A stretch of 64,000 bases of DNA from Pavona decussata (lineage: Eukaryota). The translations under genes were made by a program, and so were the position numbers. Below the pieces are notes generated by a model. The model was not told the DNA's origin. It did no database searches and was given only the letters and a program-made list of their open reading frames with translations. Where the stretch lies: assembly GCA_977016875.1 (NCBI GenBank), contig CDRNST010000274.1, positions 1,364,001-1,428,000 of the forward strand. Direction: 5' to 3'. Position 1 is the stretch's first letter; the number at the start of each line of letters is the position of its first letter. Shown one piece after another: positions 1,386-64,000 of this stretch.

Positions 1386-1457
1386 GAACTTGACTGACAA
1401 CGAGTTGAAGAAACTGCCCAAAGGAGTTTTTGCTAACAATACCAAGCTAGGAAGGCT
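1386..1457 (+). CDS. LRR exon 1 (family A): NLTDNELKKLPKGVFANNTKLGR(L)
   Basis: catag|G AAC TTG...AGG CT|gtaagt; 72 nt, open frame. Confidence 0.85.
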
Positions 1458-3005
1458 GTAAGTATAACTTCTTCTTTGTCTGTCAAATAATAATCGAGGA
1501 GCTGGTGTTGCTTAAAAAGAAATATTGTGTCTCCTATAATAAATTCGTTTTTGCAGCCTTTGTTCATTAACTAGGCATGAATCAATTCTCAATCAAAAAC
1601 TGAAAAGGAGTCTAAAATTTTACTGTTCAGAACATGTGGTCGTTTAAAAGTATCGCCGTTTGTGTTGTAAACTAACTTATTAGTAGGGGGGGGGGGGGGG
1701 CATGCTTTAGAAGGAAAAAAGAGGAAATTTATTGAGTTACGAGAGCGATTTAAAGATCTTTGGTTTTATTTGATGCATACGGAATGGATAAGCCTTCCCG
1801 CAGTGGACATCTCAACAGTATTTGGATGAAAATTTTATAACAAAAGGGTTAATACGATAATCTTTGTTTGTATTCGTTGGCTGATAAGCTGCAATTTAAT
1901 GTATTTCGTAAGGACCGGTTTACAAGCTACTACCTGTCAGCGGATTTGGTGGCTCAACAGTATTGGAAAACGAATCCCCTGTGTATTTTGACACACGATT
2001 TACAGCCAAAGGTTTCCGGATTCATGAAATATGGTGAAGAGCACCAGTTTCTTATTAAATCGGGGAGACACTTTCGTACGGACCGCAGTGTCAATAAAAT
2101 TAAAAAAAAAAACGTGCACATACGAAATACTCAGGGATACATCTGGTATCATGTGAGCCGGCCTTAAGTTGAAAGACCCCGGCAATCTTAGAATTTCCTT
2201 AAAATTCGAACTTTGTACATAAAGTAGTTTATCGAGAAATTGACCTTTTAATGTGTCTACGCCCTTGTGGCAACTCTTTCCATCCAGCTGGCGCAAGTTC
2301 TTTGAAATTTTTAACAGCTGATGTAACGTTATGAGTAGCCAGCGTGTTAGACTCTAGAACAAGGGAGGGTGGAGGGAAATCGGTCACGTGGGAAGCGAGG
2401 GATCCGATGCTAGGATCGGTAAGACAAAGATAAAAAGAAACACAGTATCGTAGCGCAACGTCCACCTCTATTGCAACATTTTTACTTGAATTATATTTAC
2501 AATTTACAATTATAAGCGTATAAAGTGAAGCTGTAAGCCTGTTGGGTCCTTATTGGTCGTCCGATGTAATAACCTTTGATTCTGTAACCGCGGGAATTGG
2601 AATAACGGCACTATGTCTTGCGCTTATAACGGATGACTGGAAATGTAGCGGCCTTTGCGCGTGATATCTTGAAGTGGAAAGTTTTTCCCCCATCCAAGGG
2701 ACTTGGAAATTCCACATATTTACATATTCACGCATTTCACATATTCCTGACAAAAACAAGCATTAAAACAAATCCCGCCATTTATAAGTGTTTCTGTGTC
2801 TACTCTTATGAAGTATGCATACTTACTGTCTCTTTGTTTTCAAGTAACAAGGAAGTAGTCAGGAGTAATTTTAACGATTATTTTGTCGATTCACTCATTC
2901 CATAAACTGACGCGGTCGTATTTTTAAAAGTTTTAGCCGATAAAGTGTGTGGATATCATGTAAACTTACTAAGAACTTGGACAATCCGCATTTTTTTGTT
3001 GGTAG

Positions 3006-3053
3006 GTACTTGAATAACAACCAGCGGAAGGAACTGCCCAAAGGAGTTTTTGA
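3006..3053 (+). pseudogene. LRR exon 2 (family B), 3'-truncated: YLNNNQRKELPKGVF
   Basis: ggtag acceptor intact. After GTTTTTGA the sequence jumps to intron sequence matching ~8712 onward, so the 3' third and the donor are deleted. L->R change in the core. Confidence 0.8.
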
Positions 3054-3299
3054 ACGTTTGTTTTGTCTTTCTGTTTTGCTTTTTACACAAGTCAAAAGAC
3101 GTAATCATCTAGAAAAAACAGAGGAAATGTATTAAGCTGTGAGAGCAACTGAAAGATCTTTGCTTAGGTTTGATACGGAATTTATAAGCCTTCCCACAGT
3201 GTACACGCGAACAGTATTTGGATGATAAATTTGTAAGAAAAGGGGAAACGAGAGTTCCATCACAGCATTTATGCTAAAGGAAGAGTCTTTGCGAATACG

Positions 3300-3890
3300 A
3301 GTAAAAATAGAGCTGTAACCAGGATAAGACATATTGGATTAAAAAGCGTTCCGTGGTTAAAAAGATTAGAAAAAAATGAGCTTTCGGCCATCAGTCTATA
3401 GCCTTTAACGAATGAAAAAACGGAAATATATACGAAAAGGGCGCTAACACTTGAGAATAAAAGAAGAAGTGTGAAAAAAGCTAAAAGATAAAAATGGAAA
3501 TGAGGGCTAATTAAAATAAAATGGAATATTGCCTAGGCAACGGTTTTGAGTTATTATCCGCGTCGACAATTTTTGCTGTGTGTCAGGATTCGAGTGTTTT
3601 ACGAACGCGGTAATCGCCTTTGTCTATGACAAAAGAATTTTTGAAATCAATGCAATGATTGTTTTCCACGCATGGTTGGCAACATAAGAGCCATTAGAAT
3701 AGTTCTTCAAGTTCCGTTGATGTTCCTTTTTGCGGATTTGGAAGCATCTTCCGGTTTCTCCTATGTAGTTCCAAGGTCAGGTTTACATGGCATTTTGTAA
3801 ACAACATTGCATTGAAGATCCGAAGGTTGTCTGAACTTTGGACACGGGAATTCTTGATGAAGGGTTTTGAGTGGTTTGTTGTCAACACGG
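3300..3890 (-). mobile_element. Penelope-like element 3' fragment (GIY-YIG endonuclease remnant and 3' terminal region)
   Basis: Minus strand encodes NVVYKMPC..LG..IGETGRCFQIRKKEHQRN with frameshifts; hammerhead-like stem GGCTAT..ATGGCCGAAAGC at ~3378-3412; boundaries approximate. Confidence 0.65.
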
Positions 3891-61339: not shown

Positions 61340-62449
61340 CAACCTCATTGTCTGACAAAGACTAGCGCTAAGCAGTCCAAACGTCCCAAATTATATCTCA
61401 AGGTGATTACATCGTGAGACAAACGATAATAACTTGCTTTTTTAAAATTGTTTTGATTATACTCTAATTTAGAGGATTATAACTGCATGTGTGTAGTAGT
61501 TTAAAAGTTTGATTGAAAGTTTTTGACTCAGTTCAGTAAAGGTGATGCTCGCTCACGAAATATCTTGGTTATTGTATGAAACAAACAGATTTAATCTCAT
61601 CGTCCGACAAATTTCATTCTGCCGTGGGACTGATACGCACAGAGGACGTAAAACGTAGTAAGGACACCAGTCACCCTTATCGCCTGCGGCTCGAAGTGTA
61701 CTTCTTATTTCTTACCAGTTAAGGTTCATGGTTGATAATTTCGAATGTGGGTCATTCCTAAATCGCATTCAGTTTTGAGAAGACGGTAATTAAATATCTT
61801 ACATTTGGGATTCAAGCGAATGCTGCCTCTACTGTTGACCAGTTTAAGGTCACGCAGGATCGCACTCTTGCCCTCATTATACATGTATTTATAGCGCAGC
61901 TGCAGCGTGCGCGCAGAGCATCATGGGTAACAAAATATAGTATCCTATCAATGCCTGAAATCTGGGTTTTGATTACGACTTCACTGTGCGTCCGTCAGTC
62001 CGTACGCTCCACCACCGGGCAACCAATGCGAATGACACACCTAAGTATGTGAAGCCTGCGCCGCTGACGTTCGTTTATTTGGCGGGAAGTTGTATGGCCA
62101 ACTGCTTTTTGAATGAACAGTTTTTAGGACAACAGAATACCCTATTCTTACCCTATATTTTGTTTAAAGCCTTTCATGATAGGAGAAAACTCAACGATTA
62201 ACATGAACAAATGATAAGTAAAAGAAGCTCGATTATCATGTACATGTTGGTATAAAATTTACTTAGCCTTTGGCTCCTTTGAGGATTAATGATTTTCAAA
62301 TAAGGCTTTGCGATTATTATTCATTTAGACAAAAAATAAATTGGTTAACCTACAGTAGTAAATATGGACATGTGTAGCTTATACTACACAACTTAAGTAA
62401 GAATAAGTCACATATTAGCAATCATCAAGATGTGATTTTTTGTTGACAG

Positions 62450-62521
62450 GAACTTGGCTGACAACGAGCTGAAGGAACTGCCCAAAGGAGTTTTTGCTAA
62501 CAATACCCAGCTGCGGGACCT
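62450..62521 (+). CDS. LRR exon 19 (copy of exons 11/15)
   Basis: AG/GT-bounded 72 nt; offset 9735 from exon 15. Confidence 0.85.
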
Positions 62522-63678
62522 GTAAGTATAACTCCTTTTGTCTGTAAAATAATGATCGAGTGGCTGGTGTTGCTTAAAAAGAAATGTTGCGTTTGTGTCT
62601 CCTATAATAAATAACAGTTTGCAAATGGTAGTACATACTCTGTATACACTGGTTGTTCCGCTGTAATTACCTTTGAGAAATTTCAATATATTTTCTGCAA
62701 TCAGGATTATCGCGCTACTCCTCCGCTAGACCGGTGATGCACGGCCAAATCTATAGAAGAGAAAATTGATTTCTAGTCCATCCCCCTCCCCTTTTACTCA
62801 CTAAAAAGAGAGGGGACTGCAAATCGATTTCCTTTAAGTTATGGTGGTGTTCATCAGAAATTTTCTGGAATGTTTACAGCTGGATTTTAACACATTTTTA
62901 TCTATTAGAAAGTGTCTCTCTCGTATACTCACAAGTTATATTTTATGCTAAGAAATTAGACGGCCGCATTGAAAAACTAGCAAAGAAAGAGACATTTGTC
63001 GCTTTAAACTACCACTAGCCTAATTTAATTCCACGACGATCCGATTGCAGTCTTATTAACCCTTCCAGGACAGAATAGGTATAATAAGCGAACAGATACT
63101 CGATCAAATTACCACCTCTATCATATGGAACAGTTCTTTATAAGAGGGCGTGACAGTTATTTTCCCACATCCGGGAAAAAAAACATGGACAACTGCTTCA
63201 GAAGTGGTCACTCTCAGGCGATTTATTAACAATCCATGGAAAACATTATTTAAAAAAAATACACTTGTAAAATGAGATTCTGCTTCAACGGTCATGTAGA
63301 TCAATCGAGGAAATGGAACTGCAACTTTGTTAAGAGAGTCTATAAATCTCTTTATAGTCTTACAATTTAAGGTCTTACCCTTTATTTTGTTTAAAGCCCT
63401 TCGAGATAGCAGATAATCCAACGGTTAAGATATGATAAGTAAAAGAAGTGTGATTGTAATGGACATGTTGGTATAAAATTTACTTAAACGTTTTGGCTTG
63501 CTCCTTTGAGAACAAATGACTTTCAAATAAGAGCTTGTGATTATTATTCATTTAGACAAAAAATAAATTGGTTAACCAACAGTAGTAAAGATGTACATGT
63601 ATGGCTTAAACTACACAACATAAGTAAAGATAAGTCACAATTGATAGCCATCATTAAGGTGTGATTATTTGTTGAAAG

Positions 63679-64000
63679 AAACTTGGCTAACAATAAGCTG
63701 AAGGAACTGCCCAAAGGAGATTTTGCTAACAATAGGGACTTTACGCAAACACGACGCCGACGGCAACGAAAACGTCAATAAAGAAAAGGCTTACGTGCAT
63801 TACAGATTTTGATGCATTTCGTCGCCATCTTCGGCCAAACAACAACGTGAAATGCCCAAATTCAAGGTTTTATGGAGAGCGTGAGAACGTGACAGTAAAT
63901 TTTCATTCTCTGTGCTAACTTGAAGACCGTTCCAACCACTTCTGTTACTGGATAGTTTGGCCACATTGTACAAGTTGAACGAATTAGAATAAGCGCAAAG
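63679..64000 (+). pseudogene. LRR exon 20, MITE-interrupted, runs off the window end
   Basis: Same 5' exon part; MITE starts at 63734. Confidence 0.8.
63734..64000. mobile_element. MITE copy inside exon 20 (partial)
   Basis: Left TIR agggactttacg after AAT. Confidence 0.85.

Follow-up and report, generated by a model that had tools for sequence, protein, structure and literature searches.

We favour with moderate confidence the reading that the 64,000-nt stretch of Pavona decussata DNA analysed here (the window, contig CDRNST010000274.1, hereafter C274) forms the middle part of a single, very long locus that belongs to a coral-specific family of extracellular-type LRR genes and whose LRR region would be changed by germline unequal crossover. 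The locus measures at least 200 kb and is made of one capping exon followed by at least 41 near-identical 72-base LRR exons. In the proposed mechanism, this layout, with one LRRNT exon and then at least 41 single-LRR exons over at least 196 kb, would grow by unequal crossover between exon-intron units, and crossover even inside the invariant exon core would give in-frame hybrid repeats. Ordinary splicing would join the cassettes, any subset of them being in frame, and those without a usable donor or split by a MITE would be skipped. The anatomy, the history of duplication, the chimeric exon, the pattern of selection and the genome-wide family are what the sequences show; we infer the presence of the cassettes in one mRNA, the number included and a recognition target for the protein.

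Anatomy of the locus

In the 264 kb of C274 that were read, 41 cassettes and exactly one LRRNT exon were found, all on the + strand. The array reaches past the window on both sides (C274:1330152-1526286, 196 kb), its cassettes sit in homologous intron units of 1.1-1.9 kb, and AG...GT splice sites are present in 33 of the 41; no decayed remnants were identified beyond these. The LRRNT exon (C274:1321765-1321896) is located 42 kb upstream of the window and encodes four Cys. Its donor, CT/GTAAG, has the same phase as the cassettes, and its match to PF01462 (E 7e-5, 22.8 bits) falls just under the 25.8-bit cut-off. The cassettes are therefore preceded, in frame, by a Cys cluster of the extracellular-type N-terminal cap. 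Among the flanking exons that the sequence-only reading had proposed to look for, the LRRNT was thus found, but LRRCT and TIR were not found in the 264 kb. No signal-peptide exon was detected in the 57 kb upstream, no NPWxCxC motif of an LRRCT within 264 kb of C274, and no long + strand ORF fitting a terminal exon in the same 264 kb; PF01463 gave only 3 matches genome-wide, none of them on contigs of this LRR-array family. A signal peptide and a C-terminal cap (LRRCT) or membrane anchor were thus not found in the DNA read, which ended at C274:1528000, and any of the three may lie outside it.

Within the window, a search for the core GAACTGCCCAAAGGAG (up to 3 mismatches) gave 20 matches, all on the + strand and exactly at the 20 same-strand starts that had been listed from the letters of the window (Table 1). 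By chance 0.48 matches are expected, and 20 were reached in 0 of 100 shuffles. Fourteen cassettes are intact, with 72 nt between AG and GT[A/G]AGT and open in frame +1. Every intact exon has two codon bases at its 3' end (CT, GT or TT) and G or A as its first base, which makes the introns phase 2 and gives Leu or Val as the junction codon in every case. All cassettes being phase 2-2, the frame is kept in any subset of them. The earlier description of interchangeable, 72-nt, phase-2 single-LRR exons in an invertebrate, here a stony coral, therefore holds. The count of 20 is correct as to positions, but not as to independent units, because window positions 37010-64000 are a 9739-bp tandem repeat of 99.9% identity and the 14 intact cassettes amount to 10 distinct sequences.

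Across 23 distinct exons, L2, N5, L7, L10 and F15 are invariant and L21 is present in 22. The exons belong to the typical 24-residue LRR class, with the consensus LxxLxLxxNxLxxLPxxxF, a 24-residue period and one repeat per exon. Single cassettes match Pfam LRR_8 weakly (E 0.007-0.05), half of this two-repeat model being covered.

Table 1. Features of the window, in window positions
Feature	Position	Strand	Evidence or remarks
Intact 72-nt LRR exon NLTDNELKKLPKGVFANNTKLGR	1386..1457	+	AG/GTAAGT, open frame; 99% twin at C274:1333493
Dead cassette	3006..3077	+	Last 24 nt and donor replaced by unrelated sequence; aligned with intact 8288 and 35685
Intact 72-nt LRR exon YLNNNQLKELPKGVFDNNKELYV	8288..8359	+	Splice sites, open frame
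Open-frame cassette, donor GT -> GA	10113..10184	+	
18-kb transposon-filled intron	10800..28600	.	ORFs; Pfam PF05699, PF00078, PF00077
Intact 72-nt LRR exon NLPNNELKELPKGAFANNSRLWR	28946..29017	+	Splice sites, open frame
72-nt exon split after nt 56 by MITE-like insertion	30532..30949	+	Sequence reading
Intact 72-nt LRR exon ELAYNKLNELSKGVFANNTKLQW, LP -> LS	32450..32521	+	
Intact 72-nt LRR exon NLTDNELKELPKGVFANNIQLQG	34063..34134	+	
Intact 72-nt LRR exon SLNNNQLKELPKGVFDNNKRLDW	35685..35756	+	
Tandem 9739-bp higher-order repeat	37010..64000	+	About 3.6 copies, 99.9% identity, continuing to window +72409; self-BLAST
Intact exon YLNNNQLKKLPKRVFNNNKRLDW	37507..37578	+	Near-identical copies 47246-47317, 56981-57052
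Intact exon NLADNELKELPKGVFANNTQLRD	42976..43047	+	Identical copies 52715-52786, 62450-62521
MITE-split exon copy	44205..44622	+	Further copies start at 53944 and 63679
Intact chimeric exon	46123..46194	+	Identical copy 55862-55933; three-way alignment of informative sites

The remaining six of the 20 cassettes are dead and interleave with the intact ones, as the sequence-only reading had stated. The lesion of the cassette at 3006 is old and common to C274:1335112 and C274:1485098. The latter copy has gained a stop since, and in all three the scaffold residue L11 is altered (L->R or L->N); truly dead cassettes do accumulate further damage. The cassette at 10113 has a 99% twin (C274:1342228) that retains the GTGAGT donor. 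In the cassette at 30532, the insertion is 346 bp long (30588-30933), has 45-nt terminal inverted repeats with 87% complementarity and introduces an in-frame stop that overlaps an AATAAA signal; behind it, at 30934-30955, the exon continues with nt 57-72 and its GTAAGT donor. Identical copies of the insertion are present at 44261, 54000 and 63735. The four dead cassettes of this type are one intact exon that was split once and then copied three times. The MITE-split copy at 63679 runs off the window end.

Duplication history and selection

Self-BLAST revealed nested block duplications of 9.7, 32 and 41 kb. One of the four cassettes in each 9739-bp unit is MITE-split, and the 5.4-kb intron of the unit contains, on the - strand, a decayed LTR-retrotransposon pol recognized from its ORFs. 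The region 896-19286 duplicates, at 99.1% identity, DNA that lies upstream of the window, and older duplications (96-99%) of the same architecture are found near the 9.7-kb tandem block. Mis-assembly could account for part of the 99.9% tandem block. Array introns of 5-27 kb are packed with transposons; that of 18 kb contains hAT transposase, reverse-transcriptase and LTR pol fragments, as well as GC-rich ORFs without Pfam match. The recent amplification of exons together with their introns, which had been proposed from the window alone, is supported by these duplications, and so is the reshaping of the locus by unequal crossover, as evidenced by the chimeric exon at 46123. The chimera matches the 32450 type in its upstream intron and in exon nt 4-32 and the 34063 type in exon nt 57-72 and its downstream intron, which places the crossover inside the invariant core. 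This chimera is fixed in the germline assembly and has itself been copied twice more.

Under long-term selection the exons have retained their LRR scaffold, their length of 72 nt and their splice sites, in agreement with the earlier remark on exon integrity. Scaffold codons show 12 synonymous versus 3 nonsynonymous changes (omega 0.11, P = 1e-4), and at the flank rate a tree of 41 tips should have gathered at least 18 disabling substitutions (about 60 with indels), against at most 5 seen. Ligand-facing codons change at roughly the intron rate; their omega of about 1.8 is not significant, and in the sense of selection the earlier label 'diversifying' is not supported. A preserved scaffold with concave, ligand-facing residues near neutrality would suit a recognition protein that differs between germlines in its binding surface and in its number of repeats. 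Young copies are close to neutral drift. Between sister copies of this kind the divergence is 3.2% in exons versus 3.7% in introns, pN is close to pS, and the changes are scattered evenly along the exon (15 of the 32 fall in the core) and include scaffold residues (P->S, G->R, L->P). Having diverged at the intron rate, many recent copies may be redundant or already unused. In the purine-rich core, synonymous sites are almost invariant, both in the P. decussata genome and in another coral.

Alternative readings and known systems

The behaviour of the young copies leads to a different reading, in which the first few cassettes behind the LRRNT work and those of the window are untranscribed or unused by-products of segmental duplication. 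We hold this to be possible, although rather unlikely. The near-neutral, evenly spread divergence of young sister pairs speaks for it, the duplications copy dead cassettes and transposons alike, the introns are huge and full of transposons, and the 264 kb yielded no terminal exon. However, old distal cassettes remain exactly 72 nt long, open and flanked by AG/GT despite an intron divergence of tens of percent, lesions are far fewer than expected, the scaffold omega is low, and the cassettes that are really dead show the further damage described above.

Combinatorial alternative splicing has been shown for insect Dscam and proposed for brown-alga ROCO genes. A combinatorial receptor of this kind, with regulated alternative splicing and possibly alternative terminal exons giving many LRR lengths and surfaces from one locus, is in our opinion an unlikely but tenable explanation of the array. 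The symmetric phase 2-2 exons with their Leu/Val junction, in frame in any subset, and the single head for at least 41 cassettes are consistent with it. The near-invariant synonymous sites of the core would fit exonic splicing enhancers, given small exons and large introns, but gene conversion would explain them just as well, as would protein constraint combined with a short time span. The MITE-split cassette, with its stop overlapping AATAAA, could serve as an alternative end. The related Montipora models are short, as this explanation would have it, but may be partial predictions.

Given the 99.9% identity of the 9.7-kb copies over at least 26 kb, mis-assembly, for example of haplotypes placed in tandem, might have inflated the right half of the array. 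This is improbable, as the copies have private differences, exons included (37507 versus 47246; C274:1410123 versus C274:1429597), the contig is without gaps, and the older duplications nearby have the same architecture.

Agnathan VLRs are composed of 24-aa LRR modules with the consensus xLxxNxLxxLPxGVF, have an LRRNT cap and vary on the concave face; their cassettes, which are not exons, flank an incomplete gene in either orientation and enter it by somatic copying that depends on a cytidine deaminase. The coral array is similar in its LxxNxLxxLPxGVF modules, its LRRNT cap and its concave-face variation. Its cassettes differ in being ordinary exons with AG/GT sites (33/41), in a single orientation (all +) behind one LRRNT head and with no LRRCT found in the 264 kb, and the label 'VLR-like' is not supported. 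Copying of cassettes into an incomplete germline gene in somatic cells is highly improbable: the module consensus and the one breakpoint in the conserved core are a resemblance only, and it is unsupported because the cassettes carry ordinary acceptor and donor sites, each with its own homologous intron, lie in one orientation downstream of the head with no LRRCT or stalk part found, and include a chimera fixed and recopied in the germline assembly.

A close parallel to the coral array exists in brown algae. The passages of PMC11378527 dealing with the LRR-ROCO genes of Ectocarpus and Saccharina (citing Zambounis et al., 2012) describe 72-bp phase-2 single-LRR exons, exon shuffling and alternative splicing, and present these genes as proposed variable immune receptors with somatic rearrangement undemonstrated. 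The coral array shares with them, as they appear in those passages, the single LRR per 72-nt phase-2 exon, tandem duplication together with introns and shuffling, the conserved scaffold with variable solvent-exposed residues and the runs of LRR-only exons. According to the same passages, the algal proteins are cytosolic LRR-ROC-COR GTPases encoded by compact genes of about 16 exons, whereas the coral array, in an animal host, has an extracellular-type LRRNT cap and at least 41 exons, which stretch over about 200 kb or more and are separated by transposon-filled kilobase introns. That source also recounts that the LRR ectodomain of the LH receptor is encoded by exons of about 72 nt with phase-2 introns (Koo et al., 1991, in PMC11378527), thought there to be duplicates of one prototype exon.

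The array resembles glycoprotein-hormone and LGR/RXFP receptors in exon length and intron phase. Those receptors have a fixed, conserved set of 9-17 repeats and a large 7TM exon at the end, unlike the young, near-identical and variable number of repeats found here. No 7TM-like ORF (at least 130 aa, + strand) was detected in 264 kb of C274, and PF00001 was not found on C274 among the 147 of 4634 genome-wide candidates scored. A Toll-like receptor found no support; all 94 TIR candidates of the genome were scored, and none is on C274 or beside another array.

The gene family in corals and its meaning

The locus is one of a family of about 32, of 100-370 kb each. The P. decussata genome has 32 LRRNT heads without internal stop, each followed by same-strand cassettes; those at 1696036 and 1885264 come next on C274. 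The cassette cores of the genome number at least 175. All 16 heads that were fully read have four Cys and the donor CT/GTAAG or CT/GTGAG. Another coral assembly shows the same head in front of the same cassettes, of which one is dead, and their nucleotide core is nearly identical. Related RefSeq models exist in Montipora (XP_068704577.1, 'LRTM2-like', 165 aa; M. capricornis 'LRRC3-like', 119 aa). They likewise join an LRRNT with CPxPCxC...QLTSIPGPLP to 24-aa NxLxxLPxGxFxxNxxL repeats; one bears a signal peptide and one has a 100% identical two-repeat duplication. These models, from the complex clade (Acroporidae), are only 43-55% identical and have 2-5 repeats, possibly being partial. The family is thus a trap for gene predictors, as ORF-based calling misses the cassettes and the sole related database models found are short and possibly partial.

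To our knowledge, the receptors by which stony corals tell self from non-self, or admit or refuse symbionts and microbes, are largely unknown. The family has features expected of a fast-evolving recognition system, namely a protected scaffold, freely changing ligand-facing residues, very recent unequal crossover that alters repeat number and hybrid repeats arising inside the exon, and it is a concrete case of exon-intron units acting like an intragenic macrosatellite. It is conceivable, although distinctly doubtful, that some 32 giant one-head loci combine their interchangeable 72-nt exons differently among cells, individuals or life stages, by exon choice and by frequent unequal crossover in the germline that breaks within the conserved core. 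Highly variable recognition proteins, secreted or membrane-bound, would result and could serve in allorecognition, in the choice of symbionts or in immunity. If true, animals would have a counterpart to what has been proposed for brown-alga ROCO genes, and a diversity like that of VLRs would be attained through splicing. Should the cassettes be variably combined in mRNA, the family would give an early-branching animal a new way of diversifying its receptors; should they not, it would still be a clear example of birth-and-death evolution of LRR exons.

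Number, phase and extent of the cassettes

The search for the 16-nt core GAACTGCCCAAAGGAG of the 72-nt single-LRR exons (cassettes, named here by their start in the window) gave 20 matches in the window at up to 3 mismatches, all of them on the + strand and against a chance expectation of 0.48, which bore out the 20 same-strand cassettes listed in the sequence-only reading. The 14 cassettes described there as intact were also recovered, each with exactly 72 nt between AG and GT[A/G]AGT and open in frame +1. The cassettes are not independent units, since they lie in duplicated blocks and the 14 intact ones correspond to 10 distinct sequences. 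Single cassettes matched LRR_8 weakly, which is what one repeat should give against a model of two.

The window (C274:1364001-1428000) belongs to a 602-Mb assembly, and 264 kb of its contig (CDRNST010000274.1, hereafter C274) were read around it, up to C274:1528000; the array past this point and the other arrays are known as coordinates or 3-kb loci only. A total of 41 cassettes was present within the 264 kb, all in + orientation, and 33 of them were intact, representing 23 distinct sequences. No other LRR-like exons or decayed remnants were detected in these 264 kb. Extra BLAST signals at five places were considered as decayed cassettes and rejected, as they consisted of (ATA)n repeats or of displaced intron sequence. 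Among the distinct exons, the last two bases were CT (17), GT (4) or TT (2), and the first base was G or A. Exons therefore end in two codon bases and the introns are phase 2 on both sides, so that the codon at any junction encodes Leu or Val, at the L4 position of the LxxLxLxxNxL motif.

Features of the array and of the neighbouring DNA (strand, where given, in brackets)
Feature	Location	Description
LRRNT exon (head)	C274:1321765-1321896	ACPEPCVCSPWRYDALINVSCVGKQLTSIPGPLPTDAGFL; PF01462 match, E 7e-5
Following heads	C274:1696036; C274:1885264	
Conserved block upstream of the head	C274:1321330-1321505	
Cassettes in 264 kb	C274:1330152 to 1526286 (+)	
Block copied from upstream	window 896-19286	99.1% copy of DNA 32 kb upstream
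Block copied downstream	window 31913-43235	96-99% copy located 41 kb downstream
Tandem repeat	window 37010-64000, running on to +72409	9739-bp unit, ~3.6 copies, 99.9% identity
Chimeric cassette 46123, 5' part	upstream intron and exon nt 4-32	32450 type
Chimeric cassette 46123, 3' part	exon nt 57-72 and downstream intron	34063 type
MITE-like element	window 30588-30933; copies 44261, 54000, 63735	346 bp, inside LRR exon
Transposon nest	window 14527-15847 (-), 19682-21049 (-), 21932-25246 (-), 26327-28548 (+)	in 18-kb intron
Duplicate of GC-rich ORFs of the nest	C274:1356181-1358141	96% identity
31-nt tandem repeat	window 19341-19422	2.7 copies, inside transposon block
(ATT)20 microsatellite	window 33477-33537	within cassette intron
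Mpv17/PMP22-like ORF	L001:3289-3804 (+), C274:1267289	PF04117
Mpv17/PMP22-like ORF	L002:3575-4081 (+), C274:1277575	PF04117

Within the transposon nest, one ORF of 455 aa encodes a hAT-type transposase (PF05699). Reverse-transcriptase and protease fragments accompany it, along with ORFs of 200-320 aa that are GC-rich (52%) and had no Pfam match. The two Mpv17/PMP22-like ORFs form a tandem pair some 45-55 kb 5' of the LRRNT exon. One of them showed identities of 83% with the protein of Orbicella faveolata, 80% with Oculina patagonica and 60% with Acropora, on which basis a stony coral of the robust clade was judged most likely.

Turnover of the array and dead cassettes

Recent amplification of the exons together with their introns, as proposed from the sequence, was supported by the block copies, whose identities range from 96 to 99.9%. 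In cassette 46123, which joins two cassette types, the crossover point lies inside the invariant exon core, and the chimera was later duplicated along with the 9.7-kb unit. This switch within the core demonstrates that the array changes by unequal crossover between exon-intron units, even within the exon.

Intact cassettes were indeed interleaved with dead ones, of the 30532, 3006 and 10113 types. Cassette 30532 and its three copies (44205, 53944 and 63679) represent one intact exon interrupted after nt 56 by the MITE-like insertion, which has 45-nt terminal inverted repeats (87% complementary) and whose four copies are the only ones within the 264 kb. Exon nt 57-72 and then a GTAAGT donor follow directly 3' of the insertion, and the stop codon that it supplies overlaps an AATAAA signal. 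Cassette 3006 is without its donor and final 24 nt, the loss being old and common to two further copies; the L11 scaffold position is changed (L to R or L to N) in 3/3 copies of this type, one of which later acquired a stop. In cassette 10113 the donor has changed from GT to GA, and its 99% twin is intact. The dead cassettes of the window are three independent lesions, each spread passively by block duplication.

LRRNT heads, search for the gene ends and related sequences in other corals

Annotation of the flanking DNA, suggested earlier as a check, yielded the LRRNT part of the expected gene, as one exon upstream (the head capping the array), and none of the signal peptide, LRRCT and TIR parts. 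The head is the sole LRRNT in the 264 kb and ends in CT followed by GTAAGA, with a phase equal to that of the cassettes. None of six type-I heads examined has a signal-peptide exon within 1.5 kb, nor was one of the Montipora type or of the type of locus L036 found in 57 kb upstream. LRRCT was found neither by Pfam nor by motif, the latter over 264 kb, and no TIR match of the genome was near any array. Regarding the terminal exon, the 264 kb gave no plausible ORF, the long + strand ORFs being transposon ORFs only. In the 7tm_1 search, none of the 147 candidates scored (of 4634 genome-wide) lay on C274. The TIR-domain matches amounted to 85 genome-wide, and dense same-strand clusters of them on contigs C421, C56, C195, C27 and C58 suggest that this coral has TIR genes in large tandem families. 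In addition, six type-I loci have in common a block at 260-435 nt 5' of the LRRNT exon, with 90-95% conservation among paralogues and no coding frame, which may be either a shared repeat or an element of the promoter or 5'UTR.

Cassette cores at no more than 1 mismatch numbered 175 genome-wide, versus 6 for a control pattern, and formed same-strand clusters on at least 13 contigs. The genome contains 32 LRRNT heads, 12 of them of the window's type, none with internal stops and each located upstream of same-strand cassettes. All heads that were read (16/16) retain four Cys and an identical donor phase, and it is in the Cys3-Cys4 loop that they vary. In the LRRNT exons of L006 (which holds the head of this array), L025-L028, L030, L032, L033, L037, L038 and L040-L042, differences within a subtype fall nearly all in the 5-7 residues from Cys3 to Cys4, for example SPW[RWLQ][YG]D[RGA] and TP[VHY][SR][GYWR][DY][PR]. 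As the remainder of the exon is almost invariant, the cap carries a hypervariable loop.

Another coral assembly (ENA ERZ25073805) has a head followed by two intact cassettes and a dead one within 5.7 kb and, on the same contig (loci L035 and L043), by 12 kb without cassettes. In two RefSeq models from Montipora an LRRNT of this kind is joined to 24-aa repeats, and one of the two has a signal peptide. When full-length relatives were sought by phmmer with the LRRNT exon as query, the matches were limited to ORF-style fragments and two short models from Montipora. Word-indexed searches, whether with P0008 or with an alignment that combined P0008, P0009 and single exons, gave nothing beyond generic or bacterial LRR proteins. 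The literature search found no paper describing this coral LRR family.

Selection on the exons and reading of the locus

Across the 41 units the exon core (nt 18-53) was 91-97% conserved, whereas the flanking introns were gap-riddled and conserved at 55-75%; the exon ends were about as variable as the introns. Substitutions were counted on a tree of the 33 intact cassettes.

Tree-based substitution counts by codon class
Codons	Synonymous	Nonsynonymous	Omega	P
A-priori LRR scaffold	12	3	0.11	1e-4
Concave face (x2, x3, x5, x7, x8, x10)	3	52	~1.8	not significant
All	15	84	1.26	not significant

Codons of the concave face changed at about the intron rate. Positive selection on this face, with a pairwise dN/dS of about 3, was lost in the tree counts (P = 0.48), and diversifying selection is not demonstrated. 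With the flanks changing at 2.87 substitutions per site (parsimony), the tree would be expected to carry about 18 lesions of splice-site or nonsense type (about 60 with indels), and at most 5 were seen. This deficit indicates that exon integrity and scaffold have been under purifying selection through most of the history of the array. In the 13 young sister pairs, exons differed as much as introns (3.2% and 3.7%, respectively, in the pairs with well-aligned introns), pN was close to pS, and changes were evenly spread, including P to S, G to R and L to P at conserved positions. As exons and introns diverge alike, the recent copies may be redundant or already unconstrained, at low statistical power.

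Taken together, the best-supported reading, to which we give a modest preference, is that the locus would be a single LRR gene of many exons and great length, from a family specific to corals, with a repeat region under birth-and-death by unequal crossover. Ordinary splicing would join the cassettes and leave out the broken ones. A largely unused exon graveyard would agree with the pattern in the young copies, but is at odds with the long-term integrity of the old, distal cassettes; we consider it doubtful, while ranking it first among the alternatives.

Synonymous sites of the purine-rich core GAAGGAACTGCCCAAAGGAGTTTTTG (exon nt 18-53, all cassettes) almost never change: the 10 non-scaffold core codons showed 0 synonymous versus 29 nonsynonymous events (P = 0.017), and the same bases recur in the second coral assembly (L035). 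This invariance fits a splicing enhancer or a gene conversion tract alike, and a recombination hot spot is possible. Regulated combinatorial splicing of the cassettes would be an attractive reading of the sequence; we hold it to be unlikely and place it after the graveyard. That mis-assembly has inflated part of the array, which would affect its right half only, seems quite improbable. A VLR-like somatic assembly is contradicted by the splice sites on the cassettes, their single orientation and a chimera fixed in the germline, and is to be regarded as extremely improbable.

The long LRR gene favoured here can be compared with two known systems. Among animals, the classical instance of phase-2 LRR exons is provided by the gonadotropin/LGR receptor genes. 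The brown-alga ROCO family comes closest of all known systems: according to PMC11378527, which cites Zambounis et al. (2012), each of its phase-2 exons of 72 bp encodes a single LRR, these exons undergo shuffling and alternative splicing, and the exposed residues vary. In contrast to both, the coral locus has an LRRNT head, is larger (at least 41 exons over about 200 kb or more), contains young copies (96-99.9% identity) and belongs to a multiple system of about 32 loci. Given its architecture and the pattern of selection on it, the locus is a concrete candidate, open to testing, for a variable family of recognition proteins in corals.
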